A stretch of 64,000 bases of DNA from Isurus oxyrinchus (Eukaryota), in assembly GCA_026770705.1 (NCBI GenBank), contig JANJGN010000242.1:372001-436000 (forward strand). Reading direction: 5' to 3'. This document shows, one piece after another, positions 1-58,794 of this stretch. A program made the position numbers and the translations under genes. The notes beneath the pieces were generated by a model. The model made no database searches and had not been told where the DNA came from. It saw nothing but the letters and a program-made list of their open reading frames with translations. Each line of letters opens with the position of its first letter. The stretch's first letter is position 1.

Positions 1-1330
1 TAAAAGTACAATTCGAGCCCAGGTTGCTGGGTGAGGTCTATGGAGCAAAGTACTGTAATAGGCTCCAATCTGGGATGCTGTGTAAAGTTTTGGTCTCCTT
101 ACTTGAGGAAGGATCTACTTCCTTTGCTGGGAGTGCAACAAATGTTCATCAGACTGATTCCTGAGATAAAGAGATTGTCTTATAAGAAGAGATTGAGTAA
201 TCTGGGCCTATCTTCCCTAGGGTTTAGAGGAATGAGATGTAATGAGATGTAATTTCATTAGAACATCTAACACCCAGGACAGGATAGATTCCGGATGGGT
301 GTTTCCCCGGGCTGGTAGGCCTATAACTACGGCTCACAGTTTCAGAATAAGGATTCGGTCATTCGAAGTGAGAAAAAGAGACATTTCTTCAGTCAAGCTA
401 TTGTTGTGAATCTCTGACATTTTCTAGCTCAGAGAGTGGTTGCGTGTATTAAATGAAGTTTTCAATGGATTTCGGGATGCAAAAGGAATCAAGGGGACAT
501 TGCGGCGGGAGATGGGAGATGAGTCGGGATATTATTGAATGACGGACCAGGTTTGAAAGGTGACATGGGCGCCCCTTCTTCTGTTTGTTGTATTAAACTC
601 TTTGAGCTGTTACACTTATGAGGAAAAAAAATCAGGAACAATCTACATCTTTGTGGAAAGATTGGACAGGCCGGTCCTCTTGTCTCTGGAGAACAGAGGA
701 GCAAGAGCAGAAATCAGTGAAATCGTTTAAATAATGAACGGGCTCATTGGGGTGGTTGTAGAATAGCTGATTATTTGTGGGTGAGCCTAGGGCCATTAAC
801 ATAACACAGTCACTAAGAGAACAAATAATGACATTAAGAAGGACAAGTGTAAAAACAGGCAGGTCAGAATGTGAAACTACTGCCGCAGGCAGTGGTTGGA
901 GCAGATAGTACTGACACATTTATGAGGAGACTTAAAAATACAGAAGGGAGAACGAAACAGAGTGACTCAGGGAGCTGAGTGGAAATTGTCAATTAGATTT
1001 CGGGCAGATGGCGGCTGGTCCGCAGTAAGTAAACAGGCATAAATCATTTGAGCCGAATGGATTAATCCCCTTCAGGCAGATTCTGTGTAAAGTAAAATTT
1101 AGAGAGAACTCCAATTAGAGAGCCCGTCAATCTGTAAATGGGCGGAAAAATTTTTTGAAATTGTCCGAGAGCCGGAAGAGGCAGTTCCCAGTGAGTAACA
1201 GTAAAACCACTGCGGTAACTGAACAGGCTGAGGCCAATCGACTACTGCGAAACTCTGAGACAATTTCCCACGATTGCTAAATCCCCATGCAAGAAACGCA
1301 AACAGCACAAAGGAAATCTGGAAATAAAAT
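1..1330 (+). repeat. Inverted, diverged copy of the NAR-TCR J-to-supporting-V intron (includes a CR1 LINE 3' fragment)
   Basis: 1090-1260 is the reverse complement of cassette intron sequence at ~14400-14560; the CR1 peptide (GVQQMFIRLIPE) is on + here but on - in every cassette. Confidence 0.7.
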
Positions 1331-2479
1331 GAAACTAAATGTAAGTATTTCAAAATGAATGGAAATGGAGAAGTATGAAACCTATTGATATAAGAAATTA
1401 AGATTTTTTTTTTCAAACAAACACTGATTGAAAAACATTCACTCAATATTTTTCCTTCCGATTACGTTTAAAGAATCGTGGTCTCTTAGATTTAATCTGC
1501 TGCAACCAGTGTTGGTAATGATGATATACAAATGTATCCGCGGCCCCACATTGCAGACGGTGACTCGGGTGATCGGCCACATCGACCTCTCAGGATTCAT
1601 GTTTCACGAAGGTCACTGTCACTACCTGCTGAAAGGACCTTTGGTTGTGTTAAATGTGCTTAAAAATACAAGTTGTATTTGTGCTAGCTCTGAGGCAAAA
1701 CAAATTTATGTCATGCACTGTTCTGCGCTTTTTCAGGCCAGGAGCATTCAAAATCAGAAGGAAATTGGGCGATATTTAACGTGCAAAACTTGTGTATGAA
1801 GCAGGAACGCCTTGTCGGGTCTTAATTTTGTCTTTCGATGAATCAGCTGAGGATTATGTCTTTGAATGCACATTGGGGATCAGCGGCAGCTACTTAAAGG
1901 TCGATTCAACAATCGACCACGTTTGTGTGACGTACAGTCGACCAAATTAGTGTGACGTCCTCGGCTCCTGAAGTCGTTTATTGGCCCTTTTCTGCCCTTG
2001 GTGTACGTGCCTGGATTATTGAGCAGCCCCATGTCCTTGTCCCCGTCAGTTTCCAGGAGCATTTGACTGCGGTTGGTTCACTAGGTTTATTTTAACAGAA
2101 CGTGTTGTTAGAGCCGGGACAGTTTATACATAATGACGCGATTTCACAAGGTAGTGAGTGTGACCTTTAAAACAAGTCCCAGACACAGTGGGCACCCCCA
2201 TTTCACTGTCCCTCTGAGCGTGGCTTCATGTTCTAAAACTGCAACTGGAAACTCTGAATAAACCAGAACTGGAACTCACACATTGCTCACTGGAATCATC
2301 GTTTCAAATGCAAATCACAGAGGGAGGAGTGCAGCAATCATTTGTTTCAATGCTGTGGAGAGTTTATTCTTTGCGGTATTTCTGTACTTCTGCCTGAGTG
2401 TTGGCAAAGTCACTGGACTGTCTCAAATTGTAACCTGATCCTCAGTTGCTGGACTGAGGCGGGTCTCAGGCTCCTTCCA

Positions 2480-5045
2480 TTGGGTCAGACATTCAGCTGA
2501 ACAGTTCAGGGATCTTGACCCAGAGACAGTGATGGAATGGAGATATATTTACAAGTCAGGATGGTGAGTGACTTGGAGGGGAACTTCCAGGTGATGGTGG
2601 TGTTCCCATCGATCTGCTGCCCTTTCCCTTCTAGGTGTTAGTGGTCGTGCATTTGGGAAGTGCTGTCTAAGGAGCCTTGGTGAATTCCTGCAGTGCGACT
2701 TGTAGATGGTACACACTGTTGCTACCGTGTGTCGGTGGTGCAGGAAGTGAATGTTTATGGATGGAGTGTCAATCGAGCGAGCTGCTTGGTCCTGGATGGT
2801 GGCAAGCTTGATGAGTACTGTTGAAACTACACTCATCCTGGTAAGTGGAGAATATTTCATCACACTCCTGACTTATGCCTTTTAGATTGTGGACAGGATT
2901 GGGGTGTCAGGAGGTGAGCTATTCCCCACGACAATCCCGGCCTCTGAATTGCTCGTTTAGCCACAGGTATTTATATGATTAGTTTGGTTCAGTTTCTGGT
3001 GAATGGTAACCCCCCCAGAATGTTTATAGTGGGGGATTCAGCAATGGCAATTATATTAAATGTCAAAGGGCGATGATTAGATTCTCTCTTGTTGGACATA
3101 GTCATTGCCTGACACTTGTATGCTGCGAATGTTACTCCTGGATGACAAGTCCTCAGCTTTGACCAGATAAGACTGGATATTCTTCAGGTCTTGCTGCGTT
3201 TGGACATATACTACTTCAGTAACTGAGGAGTTGCGAATATTGCTGAACATTGTGCAAGCATCAGCAAGCATCCCCACTTCTGACATTATTCTGGAAGGGA
3301 GGTCATGAATAAAGCAGCTGAAGATGGTTGGGCCAATGACATAACACTGAAGAACTCCTGCAGTGATGTTCTGGAGCTGAGATGACTGACCTCCAACAAA
3401 TACAACCAATTTCCTTTGTGCTAGGTATGATTCCAATCAGCAGCGTTTTCTCACTTATTCCCATTGACCCCAGTATTGCGAGAGCATCTTGCTGCCACAC
3501 TCTGTCAAATTCGGCCTTGATGAGAAGGGCACTCACCCTCACCTCACCTCGAGAGTTCAGCTCTTTTGTCCATGTTTGAACCAACTGTAATGAGGTCAGG
3601 AGCTGAGAGGCCCTGGTGGAACCCAAGCTGAGCGTCAGTGAGCAGATTATTGATAAGCAAGTGCTGCTTAATAGCACTGTTGATGACCCCTTCCATTGCT
3701 TTAACGAGGATCAAAAGTAGGCTGATGGGGAGGTATTGGGCCGGGTTGGATGATTCCTACTTGGAGATTTTCCACATAGCCGGGTAGATGCCAGTGTTGT
3801 AGCTTTACTGGAATAGCTTGGCCAGGGGCAAGGTAAGCCCTGGGGTCTGCAGTAATGTTGCCAAATATGTCAGGAACCATAGCCTTTGCAATATCCAGTG
3901 CCTTCAGCCGTTTCTTGATGTCAAGTGGAGTGAATGGAATTGGCTGAAGACTGGCACGTATAATGCTGGGGATCTCAGAGGAGGCTGAGATGGATCATCC
4001 ACTCGGCATTTCTGGCTGAAGGTCGGACCAACTGGTTCAGACTTACCTTTTACACTGATGTGCTGGCCTCCCCCATCATTGAGGATGGGGATATGTCAGT
4101 GGATTCCTGTTCCAGTGAGTAGTTTAATTGTCCACCACCATGCATGGCTGGATGTGGCAGAACTGCAAATCTTAGATCTGATCCGGTGGTTTTGGAATCT
4201 CTTATCTCTGCCTATCACTTGCTGCTTATGCTGCTTGGCACGCAAATGGTTCTGTGTTATAGCTTCACCAGGTTGACACTTCATTTTTAGGTATACCTGG
4301 TGCTGCTCCTGGCATGCCCTCCTGCTCTGTTCATTGAATCATGATTGATCCCCTGCCTTGATGATAATGGTGGAGCAGAAGATATGTCGGGCCGTGAGGT
4401 TACAGATTGTGCTGGGTATAATTTTGCTACTAATGGCCCATAGCGCCACATGGATGACCAGTCTTGAGTTGCTAGATATGTTCAAAAACTATCCAGTTTA
4501 GTACAATAGTATTGCCACATAGCACGATGGAGGGTATCCTCTATGTGAATGTCGGACTTCGTCACCACAAGGACTGTGCAATGGGCACTCTTACCAATAC
4601 TGTGATTTCAGATGGATCTGCGGAAGGCAGGGTGGTGAGGATGACGTTATGTATGTTTTCCCATCACCACCTGCCGCAGACCCAGTCAAGCATCTACGCC
4701 CTTTAGGACTCGGCCAGCTTGGTCGGTAGTGGTGCCATCCAAGCCACTCTTGGTGATGGACATGGAAGTCCCCCACCCGGAGTACCTTCTGTGGCCGGGC
4801 CACGCTCAAATGGTGTGCAACATGGAGGAATACCGATTCATCAGCTGAGGGAGGGTAACCAGCAGGAGGTTTCCTTGCCCGTCTTTGACCTGATGCCATG
4901 AGGCTTCACAGGGTCTGTTGTCGATGTTGTGGACTCCCAGGGAACTCCTCCCAACTTTATAACTCTGTGCCGCCACCTCTGCCGTGTCTGTCCTCCGGTG
5001 GGGCAGGACATACCCAGGGATGGTGATGTCTAGGACATTGGCAGA
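2480..5045 (-). mobile_element. Degenerate non-LTR retrotransposon ORF2 (CR1/L2 group; APE endonuclease + RT), frameshifted
   Basis: Fragments IPGYVL, VGDFHVHHQEWLG (endonuclease) and KAEFDRVWQ, ESYLAQRK, AGVLQ..IGPTIFSCFIHDLP, MLADAC (RT) spread over several frames. Confidence 0.9.
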
Positions 5046-5623
5046 TAAGGACAAGAGATTTCCTTTTCCTTAATGAAATTGGGAAAACCAGATATACGAC
5101 ACTCGGCAATCATTAGATTATTTTAAATTCCAGATTTTTATTGCATTCAAATTTAACCATCTGACGAGGTCCCCAAATCTTTATCCTGTGTCTCTAAATT
5201 ACGAGTCGAGTGACATTATTACTACGCCACCACCCCCCTTTCCATCATGACTTTCCTTAGCTAGTCTACATCTGTGCAGGTGACAGTTAATTTTTCCCTA
5301 AATATCGTTTCTAAAAGCTATCCTGATTCTCACCCTAAAATCGTTCTGCCCCATGGCACCACTCTGCTCTGTTAGGAGGACTGAGTGATTATGGCCAATG
5401 CCCCCGCAATTTTCAAGCTCACTTCCTATGTCCTTGGATGAATCTCATCAACTGGACGCATTAACTTTACCTGCAGTATAATTTCCCGAAACATATATCA
5501 TCCTTGGAGTTAAGTTTATTTCGCGCCATTTTCCGTGGGTGCAAATATTTGAAGGGATTTAACGTATGTGTGTTTGTGGGTGGGGTGTGGGGGCCGGAGT
5601 GGGCGCTTGTGGTGGCGATGGAC

Positions 5624-6517
5624 GGGGACAGATTTTCACCAATACTTCAGGCACCAAACGGTAAAATTTGAGCCAAGGTTGGATCTGCAGATGCATCTCC
5701 CGTTTTGATAAAGAAGTTGAAGTCTGAGCTGGGAACCGCTGTGAAGGCTGTGAACATGTCTGCTGGCTCTCCTTAAGGAGGCTTCACATCAGTTGGCGCA
5801 AAACTTTCAATTAAAGCACAGTCCAAAGAGAGTGCACGTGATTGGGAGAAAACACGATCTTCGTGTTAATTTCAAGCCCGTTGAGTTTAAAAGACCGCTC
5901 ACCACTGACAGGGAGTCATCGTTTCATGTCCATTGTTGCTGCACCTGTGAAGTGGACCCACATAGTGAAGCTCCCTGAGACACCTTGTCAGGGCATAAGC
6001 AACTCTTGAATAATGTTTATTCTGGACGTTTTCTGGGGGATTTGCCTAAAAAGATTAATCTCTGCTACTTAATCTCATTGGACATTTTACAGGAGTTGGC
6101 AGGTAAATGAGATAACCTAGTAAAAATCATCTTATTAGCCCTCCCTTGATCTGAATGAGGAATGGGAGAAAGTAATGAGACCAGACATCAGCTCTAACTG
6201 CTCCGGAGAGACACTGGAGGACACGGGCAGTGACGTGACATCCGGCCCCCAGGCATGCTCTAATTATGATAATCAAAAATGAGGCCCTAAACTGAGCTAA
6301 AGCCAGACTCTCAAATAGTTTTGTTTTTATCTCAAATAGTTGCGTCTTGCTCGCCCAGCACCTTTTCACGCCTATTTACACCCCTTAGTCCCAATGACTA
6401 CCACACTTATGCACAGGCTATCTCACGCTGTGCTGAGTTGGACGCCCGAGTGCAGAGCAGCCTGTGTCACAGAGAGAGGCCTCTCCCAGCCGTAGTGAAT
6501 TGTTAGAAAATCTACCC
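5624..6517. mobile_element. Possible non-autonomous DNA transposon/MITE
   Basis: Imperfect terminal inverted repeats GGGACAGATTTTC ... GAAAATCTACCC; no coding capacity. Weak. Confidence 0.25.
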
Positions 6518-6649
6518 TCAGCCCGAAGCAAACCTCTTTCCGGCCGGAGGTTGTCCTGAGTCTTCCTCCCACCAGACTGTGGGTGCCTTGTTGAGCGGAG
6601 AGAATCTCTCAGTCAATTGTAGGCGGAATCTGGGAAATCACGGAAGGTA

Positions 6650-7490
6650 AAAGCAAAAAACTGCGGATGCTAGAAATCCAAAACAAAAACAAAAAATACC
6701 TGGAAAAACTCAGCAGGTCTGGCAGCACCTGTGGAGAGGAACACAGTTAACGTTTCGAGCCCGAATGACCCGTCAACAGAACTCAGTAAAAATAGAAAAG
6801 GGGTGAAATATAAGTTGGTTTGTGAGGGGGGTGCGGGGGGGGGGGGGCAGGGTAGGGGGAGGGTGGTGCGAGGGGGGCGGTGATGGGACAAGAAGAGCTG
6901 GATAGAGGGCCAGTGATGGGTGGAGATAACTAAAAGATGTCACAGAGAAAAGGACAAAGAGGTGTTGCATGTGGTGATATTATCATTGGAATGTGCTAAT
7001 TCACGGTGGAAAGCTGGACAAGTGGGAATGGGGTGGGAGGAAGGGATCGAAATACGCTTAAATGTAGAGGTAAAACAATGGATGGAAATACACTTAAAAC
7101 TAATCGAAGTAGGTGGGAAAAGAAACATCTATATAAATTATTGGAAAAATCAAAAAGGAGGGGCAAAACTGAAACGGAGTTGGGGATGGAGGAGAGAGTT
7201 CATGATCTAAAGTTGTTGAACTCAATATTCAGTCCGGAAGGCTGTGAAGTGCCTAGTCGGAAGATGAGGTGCTGCTCTTCCAGTTTGCGTTGGGCTTCAC
7301 TGGAACAATGCAGCAAGCCAAGGACGGACATGTGGGCAAGAGAGCAGGTTGGAGTGTTGAAATGGCAAAGCGGTCACCCAGTCTGCGTTTGGTCTCTCCA
7401 ACGTAGAGGAAACCGCATTTGGAGCAATGAATGCAGTAGACTAAGTTGAGGGAAGTGCAAGTGAAATGCTGCTTCACTTGAAAGGCGCGT
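6650..7490 (-). mobile_element. Penelope-like retroelement 3' fragment (GIY-YIG endonuclease)
   Basis: FQVKQHFTCTSLNLVYCIHCSKCGFLYVGETKRRLGDRFA in ORF 7253-7627 is a typical Penelope GIY-YIG motif. Confidence 0.85.
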
Positions 7491-7845
7491 TCGTGGTAGC
7501 TTCTTATCAACTTAATTGGGAAAAGACAAATTGAACCAATTCGGAGAGAGAAAAAAAATCTTTCAGTCTGTGTGGAAACAGGCAGCAATAAACTTGCACT
7601 TTGGTGAATAATGAATCGGCAAAGCACGCATTTATGCTGTCAAGTAAAGGAGATGAGAATGTGAAATAATTTGATCAATTATGTTTCCAGGCGAATTGCA
7701 CAGCAAGGGAAAATTAAAGGGTGTGAGGAGCGAGAAGGAAATGTAGCCCTGATCAGTTTAATCTTTTTCATCTGTGCGGGGAAAATGCTAAGAAGCATTG
7801 AGAAATCACAAGTGAATAATGGATGCATTCCCAATATCCCTGTAT

Positions 7846-8224
7846 CACTGTGCGTCTGTAATCCCACCATGTTCAGGTTTTTGTACTGGTCTCTCCGTGC
7901 TCTGTATCACTGAGTGTCTGTAATCCCACTATGTTCAGGTTTTTGTATAGCTCTCCTCATGCACTGTATCACTGTGTGTCTGTAATCCCACCATGATCAA
8001 GTATTTGTACAGCTCTTTCCATGCTCTGTATCACTGTGTGTCTGTAATCCCACCATGTTCAGGTTTTTGTACAGCTCTCTCCGTGCTCTGTATCACTGTC
8101 TGTCTGTAATCCCACCATGATCAGGTATTTGTACAGCTCTTTCCATGCTCTCTATCACCGTGTGTCTGTAATCCCATCATGATCAGGTATTTGTACAACT
8201 CTTTCCATGCTCTGTATCACTGTG
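7846..8224 (-). repeat. 62-bp tandem array of 23-spacer recombination signal sequences (6 full units + 1 extra heptamer)
   Basis: Heptamers start at 7846, 7908, 7970, 8032, 8094, 8156, 8218; nonamers (GGTTTTTGT/GGTATTTGT on +) at 7876, 7938, 8000, 8062, 8124, 8186; each spacer is 23 bp and matches the supporting-Vdelta RSS spacer. Confidence 0.93.
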
Positions 8225-8252
8225 CACAATGTTACAAGTCAGTATAAAATCC
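8186..8252. other. V(D)J signal joint (23-RSS fused head-to-head with a 12-RSS)
   Basis: GGTATTTGT-23-CACTGTG|CACAATG-12-ATAAAATCC with no bases gained or lost; GTGCAC at 8222-8227. The right half matches the D 5' RSS (cf. 16930-16957). Confidence 0.9.
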
Positions 8253-8616
8253 CCCGGGTACTTGGTGAGATGTGGGGATATTACTTAAGCAACGGGGTCT
8301 GACATGCCCGGATCCAAATGTCAGACCAGGATCACATCTGGTGTTAGGGGTTTGTAACTGGGCTCAGTAATTCCCAATCCCCATTCACTGACACCAATCT
8401 CGGGAAAGACATCACAATCCGTAAACACTCGGCATTTATAAAACTCAAGATGTTAACGCCAATAACACAATCTCATTATAAACTAGACTGTGGGGCAGAC
8501 GGTTTGAGGCGGAACAGTGAGGGTTTAACTGCGAATTTAACTCCGCTTTTTCATTTGTTTCTGCGATAATCTGCAGTGAGTTTTTGTATCGCGGGAAGCC
8601 GAGACCCATCACTGTG

Positions 8617-9085
8617 CTGCTCCAGTACTGAGCTTTACAGAAATAGGTGGCGGTGTCTTCAACTCTCAATTCCTGAATTTCCAGCGAAAATGTCTTTTCT
8701 GCTTCATTCACCGACAAAACTACTCTCCTTCCGCTGGACATCCGGTCCTGCTTTCTCCCGGTCTGGGTTCGTCTGAAGAAATCCCCGCCCGTCAAAGGAC
8801 GAGCGAAAAAATCACAATATAAAACACAGGAGATGGTGAGAGACTGATAGTGCTTCCTGGTCACTGCCGCCGGGGTCTGTGTCACTGACTAACTGAAAAA
8901 GCCTGGAAATTAAACAGAGAGAGTTTAATGGACCATCAGAGCCGAACGACAGAACGGGGTTAAAACCCCAGAGAATGTCTGTAATTGGGATGGATTCGGG
9001 CACCTTTATATTAAATCCACATAATGTTTCATCGGTACTCACGGGGTAAACAGACACACAGGGTGAAAACAAGGAGGATTCCCAT
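8617..9085 (-). pseudogene. NAR-TCR V segment 1 (leader 9043-9085, V exon 8617-8902), pseudogene
   Basis: Leader MGILLVFTLCVCLP with GT donor; in-frame TAG near the start of the V exon; RSS CACAGTG-22-ACAAAAACT at 8579-8616; FR1 Cys lost (RKHYQ). Confidence 0.88.
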
Positions 9086-12480: not shown

Positions 12481-13255
12481 TAAATGAAACCTTTTAAATC
12501 AATTACTCTAGGACCCTTCTTTCCTGATCCTCGTTACTGCAGAATATACAAACCACAAACCACAAAAAGACCTTAAACTAGAAGCGATTAAAGTCGTAAA
12601 TACTTCCCATCCTTACCCACTACCAGCCAGTCATTTCTTTCCCTTGTAGCCTCTAAATATGCAGCAGGGCAAGGCCACACTCAGAATATTTATGAAGTTG
12701 GATAGCAAAGATAAAATGCAAAGTGCACCTCCTCCCCTCTGTGCGGAATTCCCACTGTGCACCAAATTACCAATAGCCACACTCACTCTGGCTGTGTCTC
12801 CCTCAGGATGAGGTCTCTCCCCTGCTCGGGTGCAAGCAAACTGATAGTCTGCTTCTAATCGTCCCTTTCTTAATTAGAGCTGAGGTGAAATAACCAAGTG
12901 GTTATGGTACTGGGTTTGTAATGCCGACATCAAGAGTGCAAATCTCACAATGACAAACTATGAAACAATGTGAGCTGACATGACTCAAACTTGTTAAGCT
13001 TCAAATAGTAATCAACAACTTATTAAGACCCTAATCGGGCATCAGGTGATTGACAATTGACTGTTACACCGTCAGTTGAATCAGCTCCCCAACCAACCTT
13101 TTAACTTGAAAACTGTAGTTCCAAAAATTAAAGAGAAATTAAAGAAAAAGACTTACCAGTTCAATTCCCACTGTGCATTAACGGTACCCACCGTTCGTTT
13201 GCAAGCACCATGATCAGGTTTTTGTACAGCTCTCTCCGTGTTCTGTACCACTGTG

Positions 13256-13561
13256 CTGTGCGCCGACTCAGTGCACAGTAATACACAGCGGAGTCGCTCA
13301 GTTGCAGTTTGGTGATATTTAACCGGCTGATTTTCTCGGCAGCATCGATAGAAGCAGGAATTCTCCCCCCAGCAGTGTTTTCTTTATTGTCCTCTCCTGA
13401 AGTGTGTCTCTGAAGCAGATATTCCGGAGCCTGTCCTGGGGATTGACGATACCAGTGTACTGTGTACGGACAGAACCCTGAATATTCACACCTTAAAGTA
13501 ACGGTGTCACCGGCAGCAGAGGTTTGTTCAGGCGGATTTCGGGAAATTATGGAACTGGAAT
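13256..13561 (-). CDS. TRDV: Leaderless supporting TCR-delta V exon (cassette 2), intact
   Basis: Phase-1 AG acceptor; hand translation is open: SSSIISRNPPEQTSAAGDTVTLRCEYSGFCPYTVHWYRQSPGQAPEYLL...LSDSAVYYCALSRRT; extra CDR1 Cys; consensus RSS CACAGTG-23-ACAAAAACC (13217-13255); no leader seen between J and this exon. Confidence 0.93.
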
Positions 13562-15009
13562 CTAGAGATATGGAAAAGGGACATTTTATTTTTGCTCAGC
13601 CACTTTTTGACCAGGTGAATATATCAATCCCGTGAATAGCTCTGCTTTTTGCAGTAATTTTACTTCCTGGATGCCTGTATGAACGATGTTCACTGTTATG
13701 AAAATATGATCAAGTTGGGAATGAGGTAATATGTTGTTTTACACGGCGACCTCTTCCGATTAGTACTGCACTTTCTGAATTGTTGTTGAGGACATATTCC
13801 ATTGTAACTTTCAAAGGGGTAATGGATCGATACTGGAAATATAAATAGAAATATAGAGCTATGGAGAAAATTCATGGGCAGTGTGAACAATTGGATTGCA
13901 CTTTTATAGTGTCAGCGCCTACACGAGAGGCCGAATGTCATCATTCCGTGCTGGATAATTCTATGAGTTATGTTACTTTCCAGTTTCCATTTTTCTTGGT
14001 GAGACACAAACACGAGGGAGAATTTCATGTACAGCGAGGCAACCAGTTTCCAACAAAAAACTTGTTTGTTGGAGAGGAACACAGCTGTGTTGCATGACTG
14101 CGCACAGCAAGATCCAACACAAACTGATGGGAATCGTCAGCACCAATTGGGCAAAACCGAGAGTGAGCATCTACGGTCGGTCATTTAATGCGATTTAAAA
14201 CTAATCGGGAATTTCTATCTGCCTTCTGCTCTATTTCTCAATGTTCTATCAATAGTGTCCTATCTTATCCAGTTCAGCTTAATTTCGCATATGTGCAATT
14301 AATTTCATTTTATGTCTTTAATTTCACGTTCCCTTTATTTCACATTTTATTTTTGCTCCTTGCTCTTTTTTCAATCGTGCGAACTTGCCCCAAACTCTCT
14401 AAGTTTTCGGTTGGGCTCAGTCTGTTCAGTTTCCGCAGTGGTTTTACTGTTACTCAGTGGCAACTGTCTCTTAGGGCTCTATGACAATTTCAACGCTTTT
14501 CGCTCATTGACTGATTCTCTCTCGGGTTCACTGTGCGGAGTTTTCTCTCAATTTTACATTATCGAGGAAGAAGAATGTGGAAGAGGAATGGGCCATTCAG
14601 CCTGTGTATATAATCAATTCCAGCCTGACCCCACCCGAAACCTAATTGACCATTTACATCCCGCTCCCTGTGCTGGTCTGTTCCGTTCTCCCTCCTGCTT
14701 TTTCAAGTGTTCCACTAAATATATCAATCCCAATTCGAACCTCTCCCTGTGGCAGCAACTTCCACATTCTGACCAGCAGTTGTTTAAATTAATTTGTCTT
14801 AAATGTTTTATTTGTTCTGTTAGTTACTGTCATATGTTGACGGCTATTGCTTTAGACGCAATTTGTCCAGAGTAAAGCCGCTCATTATTGAAAAGATTTC
14901 CAGGGAATCTCCTCTTGGTTCTTTTTTCTGGAAAAAAAAGAGACCCAGCCTGTTCAACCTTCTCAGAGAGATGTGGATTGTAGCTGATTTATTTCTTCAG
15001 AAGTGTAAG

Positions 15010-15590
15010 GAATCAGAGCAGAGAATCCAATCAATAGAAGCAGGAGCCGCCATATCACCTTTCAAACCTGCTCAGCCATTCAGTAATATCCTGGCTGATT
15101 TACAACCTCAACGTCACATTCCCGCACTCTCCCCAGATCCCTGATCCCATTACTGTCTGAAAACCTACCGAATATTGTCTTGAATGCATACAGATTATGA
15201 ACACCCACAGCTCTCTGACTTACCGAATGCCACAGATTCACAAGAATGGTTCTACTGAATATATCTTTCCTTCTCAGTTCTATTGGATGACACTTTACTC
15301 TGAGGCTGTGACCCCGAGTTCTATAGTTCTCATTCTGGGGAAAGTCCGACCCAGGATCTGCGCTGTCAATGTTCTACAGAATAGTAGATGTTTTCATGAG
15401 ATCACCTCTCGTTCTTCTAAACTCGAGGAAATTTGGACCGAGACGACTAAATCTCTTCCCATTGGATAATCCTTTCATCTCAGGAATCAGTCTGATGAAA
15501 CTTTGTTGCACTCCTTCCAAAGCAGATTGATCTCTTTTCAGTAATGAGACCAAAACTTTACACAACGTCCCGGACTGGAGTCCATTTTAG
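15010..15590 (-). mobile_element. CR1 LINE 3' fragment within the J-supporting V intron (present in every cassette copy)
   Basis: ALEGVQQSFIRLIPEMKGLS..RRTRGDL; homologues near 26150-26680, 32950-33500, 35190-35710, 43550-44080, 50000-50540, 56430-56980. Confidence 0.8.
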
Positions 15591-16479
15591 TCCTTGACCC
15601 CATAAACCTCCCTCACCACTGGGTCGTACTGTACTTTGAAAGTCGCCCAGAAATCATCAAATCCTTCTCTCCCTTTGGATTATTTTTTATTGCTGGTTTT
15701 AAGTGAGCATGCTCCTTGTTAATAATTGTCTCCTCGTGTTTCTCTTCTCCTTTATAAGATTAATGCATTATCCTCACTCTATCACTGCACTATGTTGCTT
15801 AATTCACAGTAATCAGGGATACAGACAAATTACAGCAATCCAACCTCTCAAACATTTACAGCCAATATAGTGATTTGACTGCTGTTCCAAACATTCACAT
15901 TTCTGTCTGTGGGAGGAAAGTAATTGGTTCTGTGAAGATAATTGATAGAAAAGGCGGAGACAACGTCACTAATTTCAGTCATTGATTGTCCAATAATAAG
16001 ATTCCATCTGGACCCACATCAGGATCTCTTATATCTGAAGCCCGTTGTGTCACTCTCCTGTTTTTCTACTGGGTCAGGTGTTGAACGAGCCGCTGCAGGT
16101 ATCCGAACTGGCCCCAGTTGTGTTGAATTGATTCCCACAGTTCCTGGTTCACATTGCGCGGCTCGGACTGCACTCCGCTGCCCAGGAGAGAGCTCTGTGA
16201 CTCCGCTCCCGGGCTCTAAGGGACGGATAGAGCTCCCTCAGCCACAGTAAACACCGGGAGTGCAATCCGGAGTGTCGACAATCTCCGCTCATTAAAACCG
16301 ATTCAGAGTGTGAGAGTTCGTGATGTTGATGTTTTCTCCGAAGATCATGTTAAACCAATAATGTTCCAGATTCTGCCAACTCTCACATCCCCACTCAAAC
16401 TCCACTGATATCAATAATAAACTGACGGTAAACATTACCCGAGGCGGGCTGTAACCCGGAGGGGTTTGGAGCTACTTAC

Positions 16480-16532
16480 CGGCTGTGACAGTCACCACCG
16501 TCCCGGATCCATCCGCATAATCAGTATACCAT
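16480..16532 (-). CDS. NAR-TCR J segment 2
   Basis: WYTDYADGSGTVVTVTA, GTAAGT donor; RSS heptamer 16533-16539, 23-bp spacer, nonamer 16563-16571. Confidence 0.92.
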
Positions 16533-16914
16533 CACAGTGACACCGCTCTCAGTCTCCCCGGTACAAAAACTACCGACGCCTCAACCTGCCGGGAAATCAT
16601 CATCAGACAGCAGAAACTGCCCAATTATACAGCGGGTTTAAATAAATAAAAAATGTTCAATGTTTCAAAGTTTTTGTAGGTTCAAACTGTTCTTTGTGAG
16701 GCCCTGAACTCTGAGTCAATGATCCCCGGAGAGAGATGCTCCCTTCATATAAACCGAGAAAAATATCAGAGAAAGATAACTGAATGGTGGAAATTACAAT
16801 GAAATTTAAATAGATTGCAGCAAGAATAACATGATCCCGACAATTCATTATCTTTGCCGCGAGAATTTACGTTGTGATCGTAGAGAGGTATTTGCTCGGG
16901 TCTCTCCCACTGTG

Positions 16915-16929
16915 ACTGTCCCAAGATAA
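16915..16929 (-). other. NAR-TCR D segment 2 (TTATCTTGGGACAGT), 12/12 RSS
   Basis: Heptamers 16908-16914 and 16930-16936, 12-bp spacers, nonamers 16887-16895 and 16949-16957. Confidence 0.92.
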
Positions 16930-17311
16930 CACAGTGTTACAGGTCAGTACAAAATCCCCGGGTACTTGGTGAGATGTGGGGACATTAGTTAAAAAGTGGA
17001 AACTGCTGTTCCCGGTTCCAGCTGTTGGACCGGCGTCATATCAGGTGTAACTGGGATCAGCCATTGCCAATCCCCAATCGCTGACACCAATCCCAGGAAA
17101 GACATGACCATCCGCACACACTCGACACTTATAAAACTCAAGATGTTAACGGCAATAATCCAATCTGATTTAAAATTAGACTGTGGGGCAGACGGTGTGA
17201 GGAGGAACTGTGGGGGTTTTAACTGCAGATTAACTCCGCTTTTTCATTTGTTTCTGTGATAATCTGCAGTGAGAGATTTTGTATCGCGGGAAGCCGAGAA
17301 CCATCATTGTG

Positions 17312-17792
17312 AGATTTGTACCAGTACTGAGCTTTACAGTAATAGGTGGCGGTGTCTTCAACTCTCACATCCCGAATTTCCAGCGAAAATTTCTTTTCTG
17401 CTTCATTCACCGACACAACAAATCTCCCTCCGCTGGAGATCCGCTCCCGCTCTGTCCCGGTTTGGGTTTGTCTGAAGAAGTCCCCGCCCGTCAAAGGACG
17501 AGCGTAGAAACCACCATAGAAAACACAGGTGATGGTGAGAGACTGACACTCCTTCCTGGTCACCGCTGCCGGAGTCTGTGTCACTGACTGACTGAAAGAG
17601 CCTGGAAAATAAACAGAATGAGTTTAATGGACCATCAGAGCCTAAATACAGAGCAGGGTTAAACCCCCAGGCAGTGTCTGTAATTGGGATGGATTCGGGC
17701 TGCTTTATATTCAATCCACATAACGTCGGTTTGTTTGATCGGTACTCACGGGGTAAACAGACACACAGGGTGAAAACAAGGACGATTCCCAT
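17312..17792 (-). CDS. NAR-TCR V segment 2 (leader 17750-17792, V exon 17312-17601), intact
   Basis: VTQTPAAVTRKECQSLTITC...ERISSGGRFVVSVNEAEKKFSLEIRDVRVEDTATYYC aligns by eye with the IgNAR V pattern (short FR2-CDR2); splice sites intact; RSS CACAATG-22-ACAAAATCT. Confidence 0.93.
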
Positions 17793-19439: not shown

Positions 19440-19725
19440 TGCTGGACACTGCCAGTATCACACACACAAGCCGTTTTCGGACGCAGACACACACACACAC
19501 AGAACGACACACATTTAGCCAATCTACCTTCTGCTGGACACTGCCGCAAACCCGTAATCACACACATACACAAACTTTTGGCAATGCACCCTCTACTGCA
19601 CATTGTGATAATCACACACACACCAACACGCTCACACCTTAAGCAATCTACCCTCTGCTGTACAGTGTTATGATCATGCACACACACACCTTCGGCTATC
19701 TACCATCTGCTGGACACTACCGCAA

Positions 19726-19773
<48 letters not shown>

Positions 19774-19817
19774 AAACACACCTTTAGCAATCTACCCTTT
19801 CATGGTCACTGACGGAA

Positions 19818-19853
<36 letters not shown>

Positions 19854-20097
19854 GCACAAACACACACCTTTTGCAACCGAGTCTCTGATGGACACTGCGG
19901 GAATCACACATGCACACAAAAACACCTTTAGCTATATATTCTGTGATGGCCACTGCCGGAATCGCACACACACACACATATACACCTACACCTTTTGCAA
20001 TCTACCCTCTGCTGGACACTGCCGCAATCACATACACTCGCACACATACACACACACAATCTTTTAACAATCTTCCCTCTGCTGGACACTGTGATAA

Positions 20098-20134
<37 letters not shown>

Positions 20135-20285
20135 CGCACACCTTAAGCAATCTACCCTCTGCCGTATAGTGTCATACTCTCACACACACACTTTTAGCAA
20201 TCTACCTTCTGCTGTACAGTGTCATTATCTCACACGCACACTTTTATCAATCCACCTTCTGCTGGACACTGCCGTTATCACAATC
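19440..20285. repeat. Complex CA-rich satellite
   Basis: Unit TTAGCAATCTACCCTCTGCTGGACACTG.. alternating with (CA)n. Confidence 0.9.
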
Positions 20286-21337
20286 CTTAACCTTTCTGCT
20301 TTTTCTTCAGCCAAGTGTGATGCGGTGCCATGGGGCCTTGTCACTGCACCAGTAACCCAATGACCCAGGGCAATATCCCAGGTTCAAATCCCACTATGGT
20401 GCTTGAATTTAATAACTATCTCGAATTGCCTTCAGCGGTAAACCGCTCTTAACTGTCATGACAAAACCCATCTGGCTCGCAAATGACTTGTCCTGCAGGG
20501 GACTCTAAAGACGCAGATAGTTAGAAATGCTGACTCTCATTTGGCAGGGCTCTGTCATCAGCAGCGGGTCTACTTATCAGGTTTTATGCCCACTTCCAAA
20601 TAATTTTGGAGTATAAAAACAAATAATTATGGCCATACTCAGCAAGTTGGTAAACATGGGTGCAGAGCAAATCAGAAATAAGGATTCATTTCCACGAAAT
20701 TACATCTGAACTCAGTTTGATGAGTGGCAGGTTTCTGGTGAAAGGTCACAGACTGGAAACTTCGTTCTTTTTCTGGTTGTATTTCCATAATTTTCTGTTT
20801 GTGTTTTGAATTTGGTTAAAATTTTGTTGCGGGACACAAGAGCGGAGGGGGAAATGTCACTCGCAGGACAATCCCAGGCGCATTCTTTTAGATAACTATT
20901 TGGTCAAAACTTGGGACGACAGTAAATATGCCTACATTGCGGACACTTCAGCTTAAGCACGGATTTTACTGTAGAATTATATTGATGTTCTTTAAGAATT
21001 ATCACACAACAGTACAAAATAAACACTCTGGATCTCTCTCGGTTCCATGGGACACAATCGGACAATGAAGTTCCGCACGTAGAAAAGACCGCACTGAGCA
21101 ACTGCCCCCTCAGTCCGACACTCTCTGCTGTGACCAACAATATTTCTGATGAAAGACACTCTCCACTAGGATTTACTAGTCAACCCGGGGCTGCCGTGCA
21201 CGTATCTCCCGTTAGCCGTTCATGCTCCGAGCCGCCTGGCCCGCCTTGTGCTATCAGAGAGATTGCTGTAGCTCTCCCGGAACTGTAACCAGAAGCGTGG
21301 TTTTTATACAGTGATTGCCGCGTTTTGTCTCAGTGTG

Positions 21338-21622
21338 GAGCTCGGCCGCACAGTAATAAACCGCGGTATCGGCGTTCACCGTGTCTACAATGAGCAATTG
21401 GCCGCGTTTCTCCGACTCGGTAAGATTCAGTTCAAATCGCCAGCTTCTCCCTTTGCCTGTCGATATCTGCCTTATAAACCACTCCAGTCCCTGACCGGAT
21501 TTCTGTCTGTACCAATGCATCACGTAGAAGTCGGACAACTCGTAGCTGCAATCAATCTGCCCCGAATCCCCGCTCTGGACTGTTTCCAAGCGGGAAATTG
21601 AAGCACACGGTCCTTGAGACAT
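21338..21622 (-). CDS. TCR alpha/delta-type V segment of a different family; leader and acceptor uncertain
   Basis: IDCSYELSDFYVMHWYRQKSGQGLEW...DTAVYYCAAEL; RSS CACACTG-23-ATAAAAACC (21299-21337); GTAAGT donor at 21681-21686 but no clean leader ORF. Confidence 0.8.
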
Positions 21623-22089
21623 CGACCAGTAAAAATATTCAGAGTATGAAACACTGGAACAACGAGATTAATAATGAAAAACTTACTCTAGGTGATTGGA
21701 TCTCTGTCCTGTATCTATCTGTTCGCATCGCCAGGATGACGGATAATATCTTTAGCTGTGCAGCACAACATATGTTTGCTATGAGAATGTCAATATGAAA
21801 ACATGACACAGCTCACAACAGAAGAAAAGGACCCGGGTGAAGAGATTAAAATGTTGGCTGATTAAAGTCAATGATGGATATTCAATGTCTCCGTCACGTG
21901 TTTATTTTTCCCGCTCCTTATTGGCGGGAAATTGATATTGTTCCCCGGATATGAGGAAGCGGGTTGTTGGTCCGCTGCTCATTTCCCCCGCGGTTCTCGT
22001 CTGAACCGATCAGTTGTCTGAAGACCAGCAGCTTCTTCCGCTCCGGGTGGAGGGGAGTGAGGGGAAGAACATCTCTTTATGAGAGACAC

Positions 22090-28444: not shown

Positions 28445-28923
28445 TTCTTTGTACTCGTACTGAGCTTTACAGTAATAGGTGGCGGTGTCTTCAACCATCA
28501 CATCGCGAATTTCCAGTGAAAATTTCTTTTCTGCTTTATTCACCGACACAACAAATCTTCCCCCGCTAGAGATCCGCTCCCGCTCCGTCCCGGTTTAGAT
28601 TTGTCTGAAGAAATCCCCGCCCGTCAAAGGATGAGCGAAAAAAACACCATAGAAAACACAGGTGATGGTGAGAGACTGACACTCCTTCCTGGTCACCGCT
28701 GCCGTGGTCTGTGTCACTGAGTGACTGAAATAGCTTGGAAATTAAACAGAGAGAGTTTAATGGACATCAGAGCCGAACAACAGAACGGGGCTATCCCCCA
28801 GACAGTGTCTGTAATTGGGATGGACGTGGGCGGCTTTATATTAAACCCACAAAATGTCCGTTTGTTTGATCGGTACTCACGGGGTTAACAGACACACAGG
28901 GTGAAAACAAAGAGGATTCCCAT
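28445..28923 (-). pseudogene. NAR-TCR V segment 3, pseudogene
   Basis: TAA in the leader, acceptor AG->AA at 28735-28736, TAA in FR2, heptamer CACAGAT. Confidence 0.9.
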
Positions 28924-30569: not shown

Positions 30570-31139
30570 GGACACTGCCGGATTCACACACGCACGCTGC
30601 GCTCAGGCGCAGACACACACAAACACAGACACAACTTTAGCTATCTACCCTCTGCTGGACACTGTCATGATCTCACTCTCTCTCTCTCTCAGACACACAC
30701 ACACACACACACTTTAAGCAATCTAACCACTGCTGGACACTGTGATAATCACAAACACACGCACATACACACAAACACACACACACACACACACACACAT
30801 TTAGATAATCTACCTTCTGCTGGACACTGCCGGAAACTCTCTCACACACACGCACACAAACACAAATACACACACGCACACACGCACACGCCTTTACGAA
30901 ACTACCCTCGCATGGACACACACACACAAACCTTTAGCAATCTACCTTCTGCTGCACACTGTGATAATCACACACACACACACACAAATGGACACACTTT
31001 ACGCAATCTACCATCTGCTGCAGAGTGCCAAAATCACACACACACACCTTTTGCAATCCACCTTCTGATGGACATGCCGGAATCACTCACAGACACACAC
31101 ACATTTAGATAATCTAACTTCTGCTGGACACTGCCTCAA

Positions 31140-31183
<44 letters not shown>

Positions 31184-31440
31184 CTTTAGCAAGCTACCGT
31201 CGCATACACACACGCACACACAAACCTTTAGCAATCTACCGTCTGCTGGACACTGTGATAATCACACACACACACACGCACACACATACAAACTTTTAGC
31301 TCTGCTGGACTCTATGATAATCACACACACACGCACGCACACACACATTAAGCAATCTACCCTCTGCTGTAGAGTGTCATAATCTCACACACAGACTTAT
31401 AGCAACTTAACTTCTGCTGGACACTGCCGGAATCACACTC
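30570..31440. repeat. Complex CA-rich satellite
   Basis: Same unit as 19440-20285. Confidence 0.9.
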
Positions 31441-34420: not shown

Positions 34421-34802
34421 AACAGTGGCACCGCTCTCGGTGTCCGCGGTGCAACAACCATCGACACCTCAATCTGCTGGGAAGTCATCATCAGACAGTT
34501 GAAACTGCGCAATTATTCAGCGGATTTAAATAAATAAACAATATTCATCATTTTAAAGTCTCGGTTGTTTCAAACTGTTGTTTGTAAGGCACGGAGCTCT
34601 GAGTAAATGGTCCCGGGAACGAGATATTCTCTTCATAAAAACCGAGAAAATTATGAAAGAAAGATAACAGAATGATTTAAACTACAATGCAATGTAACTA
34701 AATTACTGCAATAATAACATCAACCCGACAATTCACTATCAGGGCTCGGAGAATTTATATTGTGATCGTTCAGAGGTATTTGCTCAGGTCTCTCCCACTG
34801 TG

Positions 34803-35111
34803 ACTGTCCCAAAATAATGTTGCCGTAGTATCTGTACTGAGCATTACAGTAATAGGTGGTGCTGCCTTCAACTCTCACATCCCGAATTCCCAGCGAAAAT
34901 GTCTTTTCTGCTTTATTCACCGACACAGCAAATCTCCCTCCGCTGGAGATCCGCTCCCGCTCTGTCCCGGTCGGGGTTTGTCTGAAGAAATTCCCGTCCG
35001 TCAAAGGACGAGCGTAGAAACCACCATAGAAATCACAGGTGATGGTGAGAGACTGACACACCTTCCAGGTCACCGCTGCCGTGTTCTGTGTCACTGACTG
35101 TCTGAAAGAGC
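34803..35111 (-). other. Pre-joined NAR-TCR V-D exon (V4D4), open frame, leader deleted
   Basis: YYCNAQYRY-YGNI-ILGQ directly followed by the D 3' 12-RSS; D at 34803-34817, junction at 34818-34827; acceptor intact; V-intron homology ends at ~35175. Confidence 0.9.
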
Positions 35112-37460: not shown

Positions 37461-37940
37461 TTTTCGGTATTCGTACTGAGCTTTACAGTAATAGGTGGCG
37501 GTGTCTTCAACTCTCACATCCCGAATTTCCAGCGAAAAGGTCTTTTCTGCTTTATTTACCGACACAACAAATCTCCCTCCGCTCGAGTTCCGCTCCCGCT
37601 CTTTCCCGGTCTGGGTTTGTCTGAAGAAATCCTCACCTGTGAAAGGACGGGCGAAAAAACCACCAGAGAAAACACAGGTCATGGTGAGAGACTCAAATTC
37701 CTTCCTGATCACCGCTGCGGGAGTCTGCACCACTGAATGACCGAAAGTGCCTGGAAGTTAAACAGAAAGCGTTTATGGAGCATCAAAGCCGGACCAGAGA
37801 ACGGGGTTAAACCCCCAGACAGTGTCTGTAATTGGGATGGACTCGGCCAGCTTTATATTAAATCCCCACAATGTCGGTTTGTCTGATCGGTATTCAAGGG
37901 GTAACCAGACACACAGGGTGAAAACAAGGAGGATTCCATT
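37461..37940 (-). pseudogene. NAR-TCR V segment 5; open V exon (37461-37750), dead leader
   Basis: Leader start reads AAT GGA (ATG out of frame), donor GT->TT; FR1 Cys lost (KEFES); RSS intact. Confidence 0.87.
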
Positions 37941-40420: not shown

Positions 40421-40481
<61 letters not shown>

Positions 40482-40597
40482 TTAGCAATCTATCCTCTGC
40501 TGGACACAGTCATAATCACACACACACAGACAAACACACAAACACAAATACGCACACCTTTAGCCATCTACTTTCTGCTGGACACTGCAGGAAACTT

Positions 40598-40631
<34 letters not shown>

Positions 40632-40659
40632 ACACACACACTCACACACACACACACAC

Positions 40660-41370
40660 ACTCGGAGTCATCCAGAGATTACAACCCGAGAGGTCTTGCT
40701 TTTTAGTCTACTGCCTAACTCCCTGAATTCTTGATGCAAAACATCGTCGTCCTTTCGAACAATGTCATTGGTACCAACATGTACCATCACCTCTTCCTTA
40801 TCCCCTTTCAGGATGCCATGCAGCCGTTCAGTGACATCCAGCACTGGCACCAGGGAGGCAACACACCATCCTAGAGCCACGTTGACGGCTACATTAGCGC
40901 CTATCTGTTCCCCTGACTACAGAATCACCTAATACTATTGCTCTTCCTCTCTTTCTCCCGTCCTGAACTTACTGGCTCCTTTTACAGCCAGAAGCTTGGC
41001 TCTGTCTGCACTCCCTGGAGGAACCAGCGCACTCATCAGCCTCAAAAATGGAATACCAATTTGCGTGCGGAACCCCAAAGGGCTCCTAATCTACCTGCCT
41101 GTTTCTCCTGAGTTACCTAGGACTACCCATTCCCTACATTCCTCAGGTCTCTTCAGCTGCAGTGTGACCACCTCTGTAAATGTGATATCCTAGATGCTCT
41201 CAGACGCACGGATGCTCTACAGTGTCCCCATCCGCTGTTCCAGCTCTGAAACCCGAGATTCAGGACACAATTCCTGAACACATTCTGGTTCTGGGTACTG
41301 GAAATGTTCCCGGCTTCCTACATGGAGAATGAGGAGCACATCACGGCTTTGAGCTCTCTTGTCATCTTAT
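40660..41370 (-). mobile_element. CR1 ORF1 fragment (paralog of 11758-12480)
   Basis: VMVHVGTNDI, RVVISG. Confidence 0.8.
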
Positions 41371-51478: not shown

Positions 51479-51860
51479 CACAGTGACACCGCACTCTGTG
51501 TCCCCTGTACAACAACCTTCGACACCTCAATCTGCTGGGAGGTCATCATCAGACCGTAGAAAATGCCCAATTATTCAATGTATTTAAATAAATAAACAAT
51601 ATTCACCATTTCAAAGTCTCTGTTGTTTCAATCTGTTGTTGTTAAGACCCTGAGCTCTGAGTAAATGGTCCCGGTAACGAGATATTCGCTTCCTAATAAC
51701 CGAGAAAAATATGAAAGAAAGATACCAGAATAATGGAAATTACAGTGAATTGTTACCAGATTACAGAGATAATAACATCAACCCGACAATTCACTATCCA
51801 TGCCCAGATAATTTATATTGCGATCGTTCAAAGGTATTCTCTCAGGTCTCTCCCACTGTG

Positions 51861-52361
51861 ACTGTCCCAAAATAATGCTACAGTAATATCTGGACTGAGT
51901 TTTACAGTAATAGGTGGCGCTGGCATCAATTCTCACATCCCGAATTTCCAGCGAAAATATCTTTTCTGCTTTATTCGCCGACACAACAAATATCCTCCCT
52001 CTGGAGATCCGCCCCCGCTCTGTCCCGGTCTGGGTTCGTTTGAAGAAATCCCCGCCCGTCAAACGACGAGCAAAAAAAATCACCACAGAACACACAGGTG
52101 ATGGTGAGAGACTGACACTCCTTCCTGGTCACCGCTGCCGGGTTCTGTGTCACTGACTGACTGAAAGAGCCTGGAAATTAAACAGAGAGAGTTTCATGGA
52201 CCATCAGAGCCGAACCACAGAGCGGGGTTAAAACCCCAGACAGTGTCTGTAATTGGGATGGACTCGGGCAGCTTTATATTCAATCCACACAATGTCGGTT
52301 TGTTTGATCGGTACTCACGGGGTAAACAGACACATAGGTTGAAAACAAGGAGGATTCCCAT
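51861..52361 (-). pseudogene. Pre-joined NAR-TCR V-D (V7D7) with intact leader (52319-52361) and a +1 frameshift in a T8 run
   Basis: YYCKTQSRY-YCSI-ILGQ then 12-RSS; D 51861-51875, junction 51876-51885; homopolymer at 52072-52079. Confidence 0.88.
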
Positions 52362-54029: not shown

Positions 54030-54230
54030 CTGGACACTGCCGGATGCACACACGCACGCCGCACTCAGGTGCAGACACACACGCACACACACACACACCA
54101 CTTTAGCTATCTCCCCTCTGCTGGACACTGTCATAACCTCTCTCTCTCTCTCTCAGACACACACAACACACCTTAAGCAATCTAACCACTGCTGGACACT
54201 GTCGTAATCACAAACACACACACATACACA

Positions 54231-54273
<43 letters not shown>

Positions 54274-54925
54274 ACATTTAGGTAATATATCTTCTGCTGG
54301 ACACTGCCGGAATCTCTCTCACACACACGCACACAAACACACATACACACACACACACACACACCTTTAGCAAACTACCCTCGCATGGTACACACACACA
54401 CACACACAAACCTTTAGCAATCTGCCTTCTGCTGCACACTGTGATAATCACACACGCACACAAACGCACACACTTTACGCAATCTACCATCTGCTGCAGA
54501 GTGCCATAATCACACACACACACCTTTTGCAATTCAATTTCTGATGGACATGCCGGAAGCACTCACAGACACACACACACACATTTAGATAATTTAACTT
54601 CTGCTGGACACTGCCTGCATCTCTCTCACACACACACACGCACACACACACACACACACGCACACACACACACTTTAGCAAGCTACCGTCGCTTAAACAC
54701 ACAAACCTTAAGCAATCTGCCGTCTGCTGGACACTGTGATAATCACACACAGACACGCACACACACATACAAACTTTTAGCTCTGCTGGACACTGTGATA
54801 ATCACACACACACACACACACACGCACACACATTAAGCAATCTACCCTCTGCTGTAGAGTGTCATAATCTCACACACACAATTTTAGCAATTTAACTTCT
54901 GCTGGACACTGCCGGAATCACACTC
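54030..54925. repeat. Complex CA-rich satellite
   Basis: Same unit as 19440-20285. Confidence 0.9.
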
Positions 54926-57913: not shown

Positions 57914-58295
57914 AACAGTGGCACCGCTCTCGGTGTCCGCGGTACAACAACCATCGACACCTCAATCTGCTGGGAAGTCATCATCAGACAGTTGAAACTG
58001 CGCAATTATTCAGCCGATTTAAATAAATAAACAATATTCATCATTTTAAAGTCTCGGTTGTTTCAAACTGTTGTTTGTAAGGCACTGAGCTGTGAGTAAA
58101 TGGTCCCGGGAACGAGATATTCTCTTCATAAAAACCGAGAAAATTATGAAAGAAAGATAACAGAATGATTTAAACTACAATGCAATGTAACTAAATTACT
58201 GCGATAATAACATCAACCCGACAATTCACTATCCGGGCTCGGAGAATTTATATTGTGATCGTTCAGAGGTATTTGCTCAGGTCTCTCCCACTGTG

Positions 58296-58794
58296 ACTGT
58301 CCCAAAATAATGTTGCCGTAGTATCTGTACTGAGCATTACAGTATTAGGTGGTGCTGCCTTCAACTCTCACATCCCGAATTCCCAGCGAAAATGTCTTTT
58401 CTGCTTTATTCACCGACACAGCAAATTTCCCACCGCTGGAGATCCGCTCCCGCTCTTTCCCGGTCTGGGTTTGTCTGAAGAAATCCCCGCCCGTCAAAGG
58501 ACGGGCGAAAAAACCACCAGAGAAAACACAGGTAATGGTGAGAGATTGACATTCCTTCCTGATCACCGCTGCGGGAGTCTGCACCACTGACTGACCGACA
58601 GTGCCTGGAAGTTAAACAGAAAGAGTTTATGGAGCATCAGAGCCGAACCAGAGAACGGGGTTAAACCCCCAGACAGTGTCTGTAATTGGGATGGACTCGG
58701 CCAGCTTTATATTAAATCCCCACAATGTCGGTTTGTCTGATCGGTATTCAAGGGGTAACCAGACACACAGGGTGAAAACAAAGAGGATTCCATT
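58296..58794 (-). pseudogene. Pre-joined NAR-TCR V-D (V8D8), chimeric pseudogene
   Basis: Same junction as V4D4 (58311-58320); TAA at 58345-58347; dead leader as in V5. Confidence 0.9.

Follow-up and report, generated by a model that had tools for sequence, protein, structure and literature searches.

V(D)J recombination joins signal ends precisely, heptamer to heptamer, under the 12/23 rule, and recombination substrates can be built so that the resulting signal joint is retained. In cartilaginous fishes, RAG activity in the germ line has so far been deduced from coding joints and from one hybrid-joint inversion. The coding joints are those of germline-joined VD, VDJ and VJ immunoglobulin genes (Lee et al. 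2000, PMC2193156; commentary PMC2193153), and the hybrid joint is a germline inversion of the D1-D2 intersegment in shark IgH clusters (PMC2193153). Lewis and Wu (2000, PMC2193153) considered three possible products of germline RAG, namely coding joints, signal joints with insertions that could account for the origin of D segments, and hybrid joints, with shark evidence for only the coding-joint and hybrid-joint events. Chromosomal signal joints are produced by inversional V(D)J rearrangement in lymphocytes, for example in V-kappa inversions (PMC2118803), and signal joints on excised circles take part in the "cut-and-run" reaction, in which they bind RAG, are poorly cut and stimulate cutting of a partner RSS (Kirkham et al. 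2019, PMC6509286). A literature search of incomplete coverage found no report of a germline signal joint.

Here we analyzed a 64-kb window of the Isurus oxyrinchus assembly GCA_026770705.1 (contig JANJGN010000242.1, 372,001–436,000 of the forward strand; all positions below are those of the window) and found a 12-RSS and a 23-RSS fused head to head at their heptamers, a structure that is probably a RAG1/2 signal joint left on the chromosome and that most likely arose in germ cells of an ancestral animal. Like the germline-joined shark immunoglobulin genes, it would be a heritable RAG product outside lymphocytes in a multi-cassette antigen-receptor locus. Those genes, however, are coding joints in which segments were kept and signals lost, whereas here the signals are kept and the segments lost, and the locus is of the TCR-delta/NAR-TCR type and not an immunoglobulin locus. 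The cases discussed by Lewis and Wu, who predicted chromosomal germline signal joints (PMC2193153), share with it a non-standard RAG product fixed in the germ line. Unlike the joint in their scheme for the origin of D segments, the fusion has no inserted bases and pairs a 12-RSS with a 23-RSS, whereas D segments at this locus are 12/12; having no inserted bases, it has not become a D. In lymphocyte inversions and in recombination substrates a head-to-head 12/23 fusion is likewise kept in the chromosome, and the retained product is set only by RSS orientation, but the inversions are somatic and keep the coding joint too, the substrates are artificial, and the structure described here corresponds to a deletion in which the coding ends are lost and which appears inherited. 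Signal circles have the same head-to-head structure, and a joint with the CACAATG-variant heptamer was tested in that system (PMC6509286); the circles are episomal and somatic, whereas this fusion is chromosomal, lies 354 bp from a good 23-RSS and stands beside six more units of a 23-RSS array.

The window contains a cluster of NAR-TCR-type cassettes, with all genes on the minus strand. Intact cassette B (13217–17600, minus) provides the reference for the parts missing from cassette A. It comprises a NAR V (17316–17600) with a leader upstream and a 23-RSS with a 22-nt spacer, a V–D spacer of ~330 bp between the V 23-RSS and the D 5′ 12-RSS, a 15-nt D segment (16915–16929) with a 12-RSS on both sides (12/12), a 23-RSS 5′ of J (16533–16571) with J ending in the splice donor GTAAGT, a J-to-supporting-V intron of ~2.9 kb, and a leaderless supporting V (13256–13552) with its own 23-RSS at 13217–13255, all on the minus strand. 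Cassettes B, C, E and H each have a leaderless supporting V with a 23-RSS 3′ of the NAR J. The homologues of the supporting V that carry names are TCR alpha/delta V regions, and the best solved-structure matches of the NAR-type V are shark VNAR domains (E 1.5e-15). Criscitiello et al. reportedly described, in 2006, a doubly rearranging NAR-TCR design in which V-D-J is followed by a leaderless supporting TCR-delta V, and the cassettes here fit this architecture. A scan for facing RSS pairs with gaps of 0–30 nt recovered three ordinary D segments in the window, each 12/12 with 15–16 nt between the heptamers. Other elements of the cluster include a V of conventional appearance (21299–21640, minus; ending ...YYCAAEL, with a 23-RSS) that lies between cassettes C and B, and (CA)n-rich minisatellites, one in each inter-cassette spacer (19684–20279, 30613–31429, 40437–40661 and 54209–54832), whose units of 50–90 bp have a CACTG-like core. 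A conserved motif also occurs 40–110 bp past the supporting-V RSS (13150–13177, 62439–62466 and an equivalent site at about 24.23 kb); on the gene strand it consists of CACAGTG, GGAATTGAACTG and a GTAAGT splice donor, and resembles a heptamer-flanked stub of a J-like exon.

Cassette A follows the reference layout from the leader to the D 5′ 12-RSS. The leader exon of its NAR-type V (9043–9085, minus; ATG at 9085, donor CCCC/GTGAGT) encodes the peptide MGI.LVFTLCVCLP common to cassettes A and B, the V exon (8617–8902, minus) is open apart from an in-frame TAG at 8889–8891, and the V 23-RSS (8579–8616, minus), formed by CACAGTG, a 22-nt spacer and ACAAAAACT, is conserved in the cassette alignment. 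The V–D intervening sequence (8253–8578, minus) aligns over its full length with cassettes B–E at 85–87% identity, the range that also holds for the other parts from leader to 12-RSS, and is followed by the D 5′ 12-RSS (8225–8252, minus), which on the gene strand reads GGATTTTAT, a 12-nt spacer and CATTGTG, with a nonamer score of 7/9, and which agrees with its counterparts in four sister cassettes through to the final base of the heptamer. Directly abutting that base is a supporting-V-type 23-RSS (8186–8224, minus) that reads CACAGTG, a 23-nt spacer and ACAAATACC on the gene strand, has a nonamer score of 8/9 and forms unit 1 of a tandem array. On the plus strand, positions 8186–8252 thus run GGTATTTGT, a 23-nt spacer, CACTGTG/CACAATG, a 12-nt spacer and ATAAAATCC, and the heptamer–heptamer fusion (8218–8231) has its junction between 8224 and 8225 with zero bases lost or added. 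The junction creates an ApaLI site, GTGCAC, at 8222–8227. An earlier note on this DNA, made from the letters and open reading frames, had placed the V, a normal V–D spacer and the D 5′ 12-RSS in this order, which the alignment with cassettes B–E bears out, and its coordinates, spacer lengths and ApaLI site are all confirmed in the sequence. The motif CACNGTGCACNNTG occurs once in the 64-kb window compared with 0.02 occurrences expected from 100 shuffles, and in the scan of facing RSSs 0–30 nt apart the fusion between 8224 and 8225 is the sole zero-gap 23/12 pair in the window.

Both partners of the fusion can be assigned from their sister copies. BLAST alignments of cassette A with its four sisters B, C, D and E begin at 8225 (8227 for C), that is, at the heptamer border. 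On the other side, the 23-RSS at 8186–8224 together with its 11-nt flank is identical to the supporting-V RSS of cassette B at 43/50 positions (spacer 18/23, flank 10/11), and to NAR-V, NAR-J or other V RSSs at only 16–26/50. The heptamer of the D 5′ 12-RSS accordingly abuts the heptamer of a supporting-V 23-RSS, as the earlier note had claimed, and the fusion that it had described as precise and obedient to the 12/23 rule is exact at both heptamer borders, with spacers of 12 and 23 nt. Searches of positions 1–7900 with tblastn and short-word BLAST detected no remnants of D, J or the supporting V, in agreement with the proposal that these segments have been deleted from cassette A, which lacks the J–V intron as well. 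It is highly improbable that RAG played no part and that a deletion by replication slippage, end joining or unequal exchange ended on heptamer borders by chance, or that the region is a diverged D. Heptamers do recur throughout the region, and an aligner can superimpose the unit-1 nonamer on the D 3′ nonamer of sister cassettes, but spacer and flank match the supporting-V RSS rather than the D 3′ RSS, the breakpoints offer no useful microhomology, and neither end is off by a single base. If the breakpoints were free to fall within a few hundred base pairs on each side, we estimate that such a coincidence would have a chance of order 1e-5. A diverged D 3′ RSS was rejected as the identity of the 23-RSS on the basis of the 43/50 identity to the supporting-V RSS. 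An assembly misjoin or chimeric read would need a shared overlap or would give random breakpoints, and neither would be expected to yield a heptamer-exact 12/23 fusion. RAG transposition was also rejected: transposon ends would have their heptamers turned outward, and those of the fusion are turned inward, the arrangement of a joint.

The anatomy of cassette A suggests how RAG could have produced the fusion. In an intact cassette, the D 5′ 12-RSS and the supporting-V 23-RSS point apart and enclose D, J, the intron and the supporting V. Because of this divergent orientation, joining the two would, by the established V(D)J mechanism, keep the signal joint on the chromosome and release the coding-ended fragment. 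RAG would have brought these two 12/23-compatible signals together and cut each at its heptamer border, and precise ligation of the two blunt signal ends would have left the fused 12-RSS and 23-RSS in place. The coding-ended fragment, estimated at ~3.7 kb by analogy with positions 13256–16929 of cassette B, would have left the chromosome as a circle with a supporting-V-to-D coding joint on it, or else have been lost. The same off-pathway join between the D 5′ RSS and the supporting-V RSS, with excision of ~3.7 kb, had been proposed in the earlier note and is supported here, its size and the excised circle being modelled on cassette B. What remains of cassette A is a dead end, consisting of a V and its own RSS that lack a D, a J and a second V, and the V has since decayed. 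Reintegration of an excision circle was considered as a different route to the same fusion and rejected: had cassettes B and A given rise to such a circle, the flank of B would follow the joint, and that flank is absent.

The 23-RSS partner belongs to a tandem array (7840–8224, minus) of 6.2 copies of a 62-bp unit, each combining a 23-RSS with the 11 nt that natively follow the nonamer and with a 12-nt linker, GGATTACAGACA. The units are 84–95% alike and 3/7 heptamers are mutated. A two-unit array with the identical linker lies directly behind an intact supporting V at 62553–62652, and at loose ends at position 8099, reads from another individual and from a related species pass from array-like units into supporting-V coding sequence. 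Because the linker is the one found behind an intact supporting V and not the 12-RSS end, the array predates the joint. An origin of the array after the joint was rejected on the same evidence, since the linker would then equal the 12-RSS end, and in the mechanism outlined above the array would already have stood behind the supporting V before joining. With the 23-RSS lying in a pre-existing array, any of its units could have served as the partner, as could a downstream supporting V.

This freedom of partner bears on whether germline RAG made the signal joint with some other topology, through an internal array unit, through the supporting-V RSS of a farther cassette or by an inversion whose coding joint lies outside the window, each of which we regard as accounts that are, taken together, quite unlikely. 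The DNA distal to the array (1–7839) is TE-rich, with LINE reverse-transcriptase and endonuclease ORFs at about 2500–5000 and a GIY-YIG-like ORF at 7253–7627, and it is unrelated to the flanks of other supporting Vs, so the far side of the event has no homology anchor. A distal flank that matches no other cassette would suit a different topology, and positions 3–1359 (plus) match the J–V intron of the cassettes in inverted orientation at ~75% (for example 14304–15637, minus), which is the order predicted by an inversion. However, the 3–1359 block is the 3′ part of a LINE, with the reverse-transcriptase C-terminus readable both at 31–252 and in the cassette intron, and independent copies of one element explain the match. 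The inversion model was rejected because this LINE 3′ end is present in both places and no inverted supporting V or RSS follows the inverted block. Cassette A is also the last cassette before non-cassette DNA, and a deletion within the cassette is for this reason the simplest account of the anatomy. LINE 3′-part copies of one family sit in the J-to-supporting-V intron of every cassette, and the one with which the window starts gives the false impression of a cassette fragment in inverted orientation. In an exact-protein look-up, neither a 31-aa ORF that crosses the junction nor either of two ORFs from the flanks had a match, and the controls likewise had none.

The V left behind in cassette A has decayed. 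Its in-frame TAG at 8889–8891 is the fifth codon after the conserved acceptor and corresponds to CAG, CAC or CAT in seven paralogues, and its private changes are 19 nonsynonymous versus 3 synonymous. Unrooted counts of private substitutions in cassette A give 20/274 (7.3%) in the exon versus 21/378 (5.6%) in the noncoding RSS–spacer–RSS interval (p=0.41). The equivalent unrooted counts are 1/274 (0.4%) versus 21/378 (5.6%) in cassette B (p=1e-4) and 4/274 versus 18/378 in cassette E (p=0.03). By these counts the orphaned V has changed as fast as the noncoding sequence beside it, whereas in intact sisters the V is under constraint. It follows from the similar exon and flank rates that the V of cassette A has drifted in the manner of noncoding sequence for roughly the whole time since the cassette became distinct, and it may have died by the stop codon before the deletion or independently of it. 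Defects are common in the cluster, where 4/8 V copies in the window, including that of cassette A, are defective: the NAR-type V has in-frame stops in cassettes C and G and a frameshift in cassette F (28449–28733, 51893–52169 and 58328–58591). Cassette D has a germline-joined NAR-type V–D (34835–35110) where a supporting V is expected, and its own V exon (37474–37746) is fast-evolving, with 16/274 private changes versus 9/378 in the noncoding flank.

Neighboring joints provide a second line of evidence on the germ line. In the window, three diverged copies of the NAR-type V are each joined to D by a few junctional bases, and the D 3′ 12-RSS is the only D signal that they retain (34790–34850, 51850–51900 and 58290–58335, all minus, with V ends at 34835, 51893 and 58328). 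At these germline V–D coding joints GGCAACA or TGTAGCA precedes TTATTTTGGGACAGT, and one copy has a stop and another a frameshift. The presence of three diverged coding joints in one window shows that RAG has acted heritably in this cluster. Together with the stop codon and neutral rate of the orphaned V, these joints favor, if indirectly, an old germline state, and the germline status of the signal joint, which the earlier note had made conditional, is probable. Since the window has just one copy of the joint, its age finds no backing in duplicates that have diverged.

We also mapped sequencing records to positions 7500–9000, using Logan contigs from one run of the species, two raw Illumina runs from another sample and Logan contigs from a related species. 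The records covered ~4% of each raw run, corresponding to ~4–5 reads at an identity of at least 99% per 1.5 kb, and about half of the contigs. Among these ~4% of raw reads and about half of contigs, no record bridges the junction between 8224 and 8225, and the right flank of cassette A is likewise unsampled. In the bin 8163–8213, depth was 0 in the Logan contigs of two runs and 0.3–0.5 in the two raw-read runs. Paralogues running on into unlike sequence made up 74% of the raw reads mapped, and at 8369–8467 every mapped record carries paralogue letters, which is why the right flank counts as unsampled. The related species (run X8) contributed only a flank piece, 93% identical, among the contigs read. 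A loose end at 8231 in run X3 belongs to the paralogous cassette E, as its D (ACTGTCCCAAAATAA) shows. Given partial sampling, the dominance of paralogues and the unsampled flank of cassette A, the absence of a bridging read weighs little.

These records bear on the alternative that the RAG chemistry is real but the joint is somatic or mosaic, carried by a thymocyte or T cell, a rare haplotype or a chimeric molecule that was placed in the reference while the germ line stayed intact. We consider this unlikely. No bridging read or contig appeared in four thinly sampled runs, which represent two individuals of the species and a relative; the joint is single-copy and precise, and the heptamer triplets at the junction are perfect, as a fresh joint would have them. 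A somatic origin would explain all of this. The read test is powerless, however, when the flank of cassette A is itself unsampled, and a polyclonal event would be present in a tiny minority of molecules and would not win the consensus path. Moreover, the germline stop in the V of cassette A and its neutral pattern of substitution fit a cassette long out of use, and a circle from the neighboring cassette would bring the RSS flank of B, whereas here a six-unit array is followed by unrelated DNA. If the joint were nonetheless somatic or an artefact, it would be a mere assembly curiosity.

We lean toward regarding the joint as the first natural chromosomally inherited signal joint, one that is old enough for the orphaned V to have become a pseudogene, records off-pathway, segment-deleting 12/23 joining by RAG in shark germ cells, offers the raw material from which D segments could arise in the scheme of Lewis and Wu, and is perhaps a fixed cut-and-run site to which RAG binds in thymocytes. 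By analogy with excised signal circles, a chromosomal joint near 23-RSSs may be a RAG-active site in thymocytes. The locus is amenable to PCR through its diagnostic ApaLI site, which would allow the frequency of somatic joining and the survival of chromosomal signal joints to be followed, and it can address whether signal joints attract RAG and evolve into D segments. If the germline reading is true, a retained signal joint would be a third and independent kind of footprint of germline RAG. The two-step NAR-TCR layout would then offer RAG a legal 12/23 pair that, once used, costs the cassette its D, J and supporting V in a single step, and what RAG can do to receptor genes in germ cells would include destroying them besides pre-assembling them.
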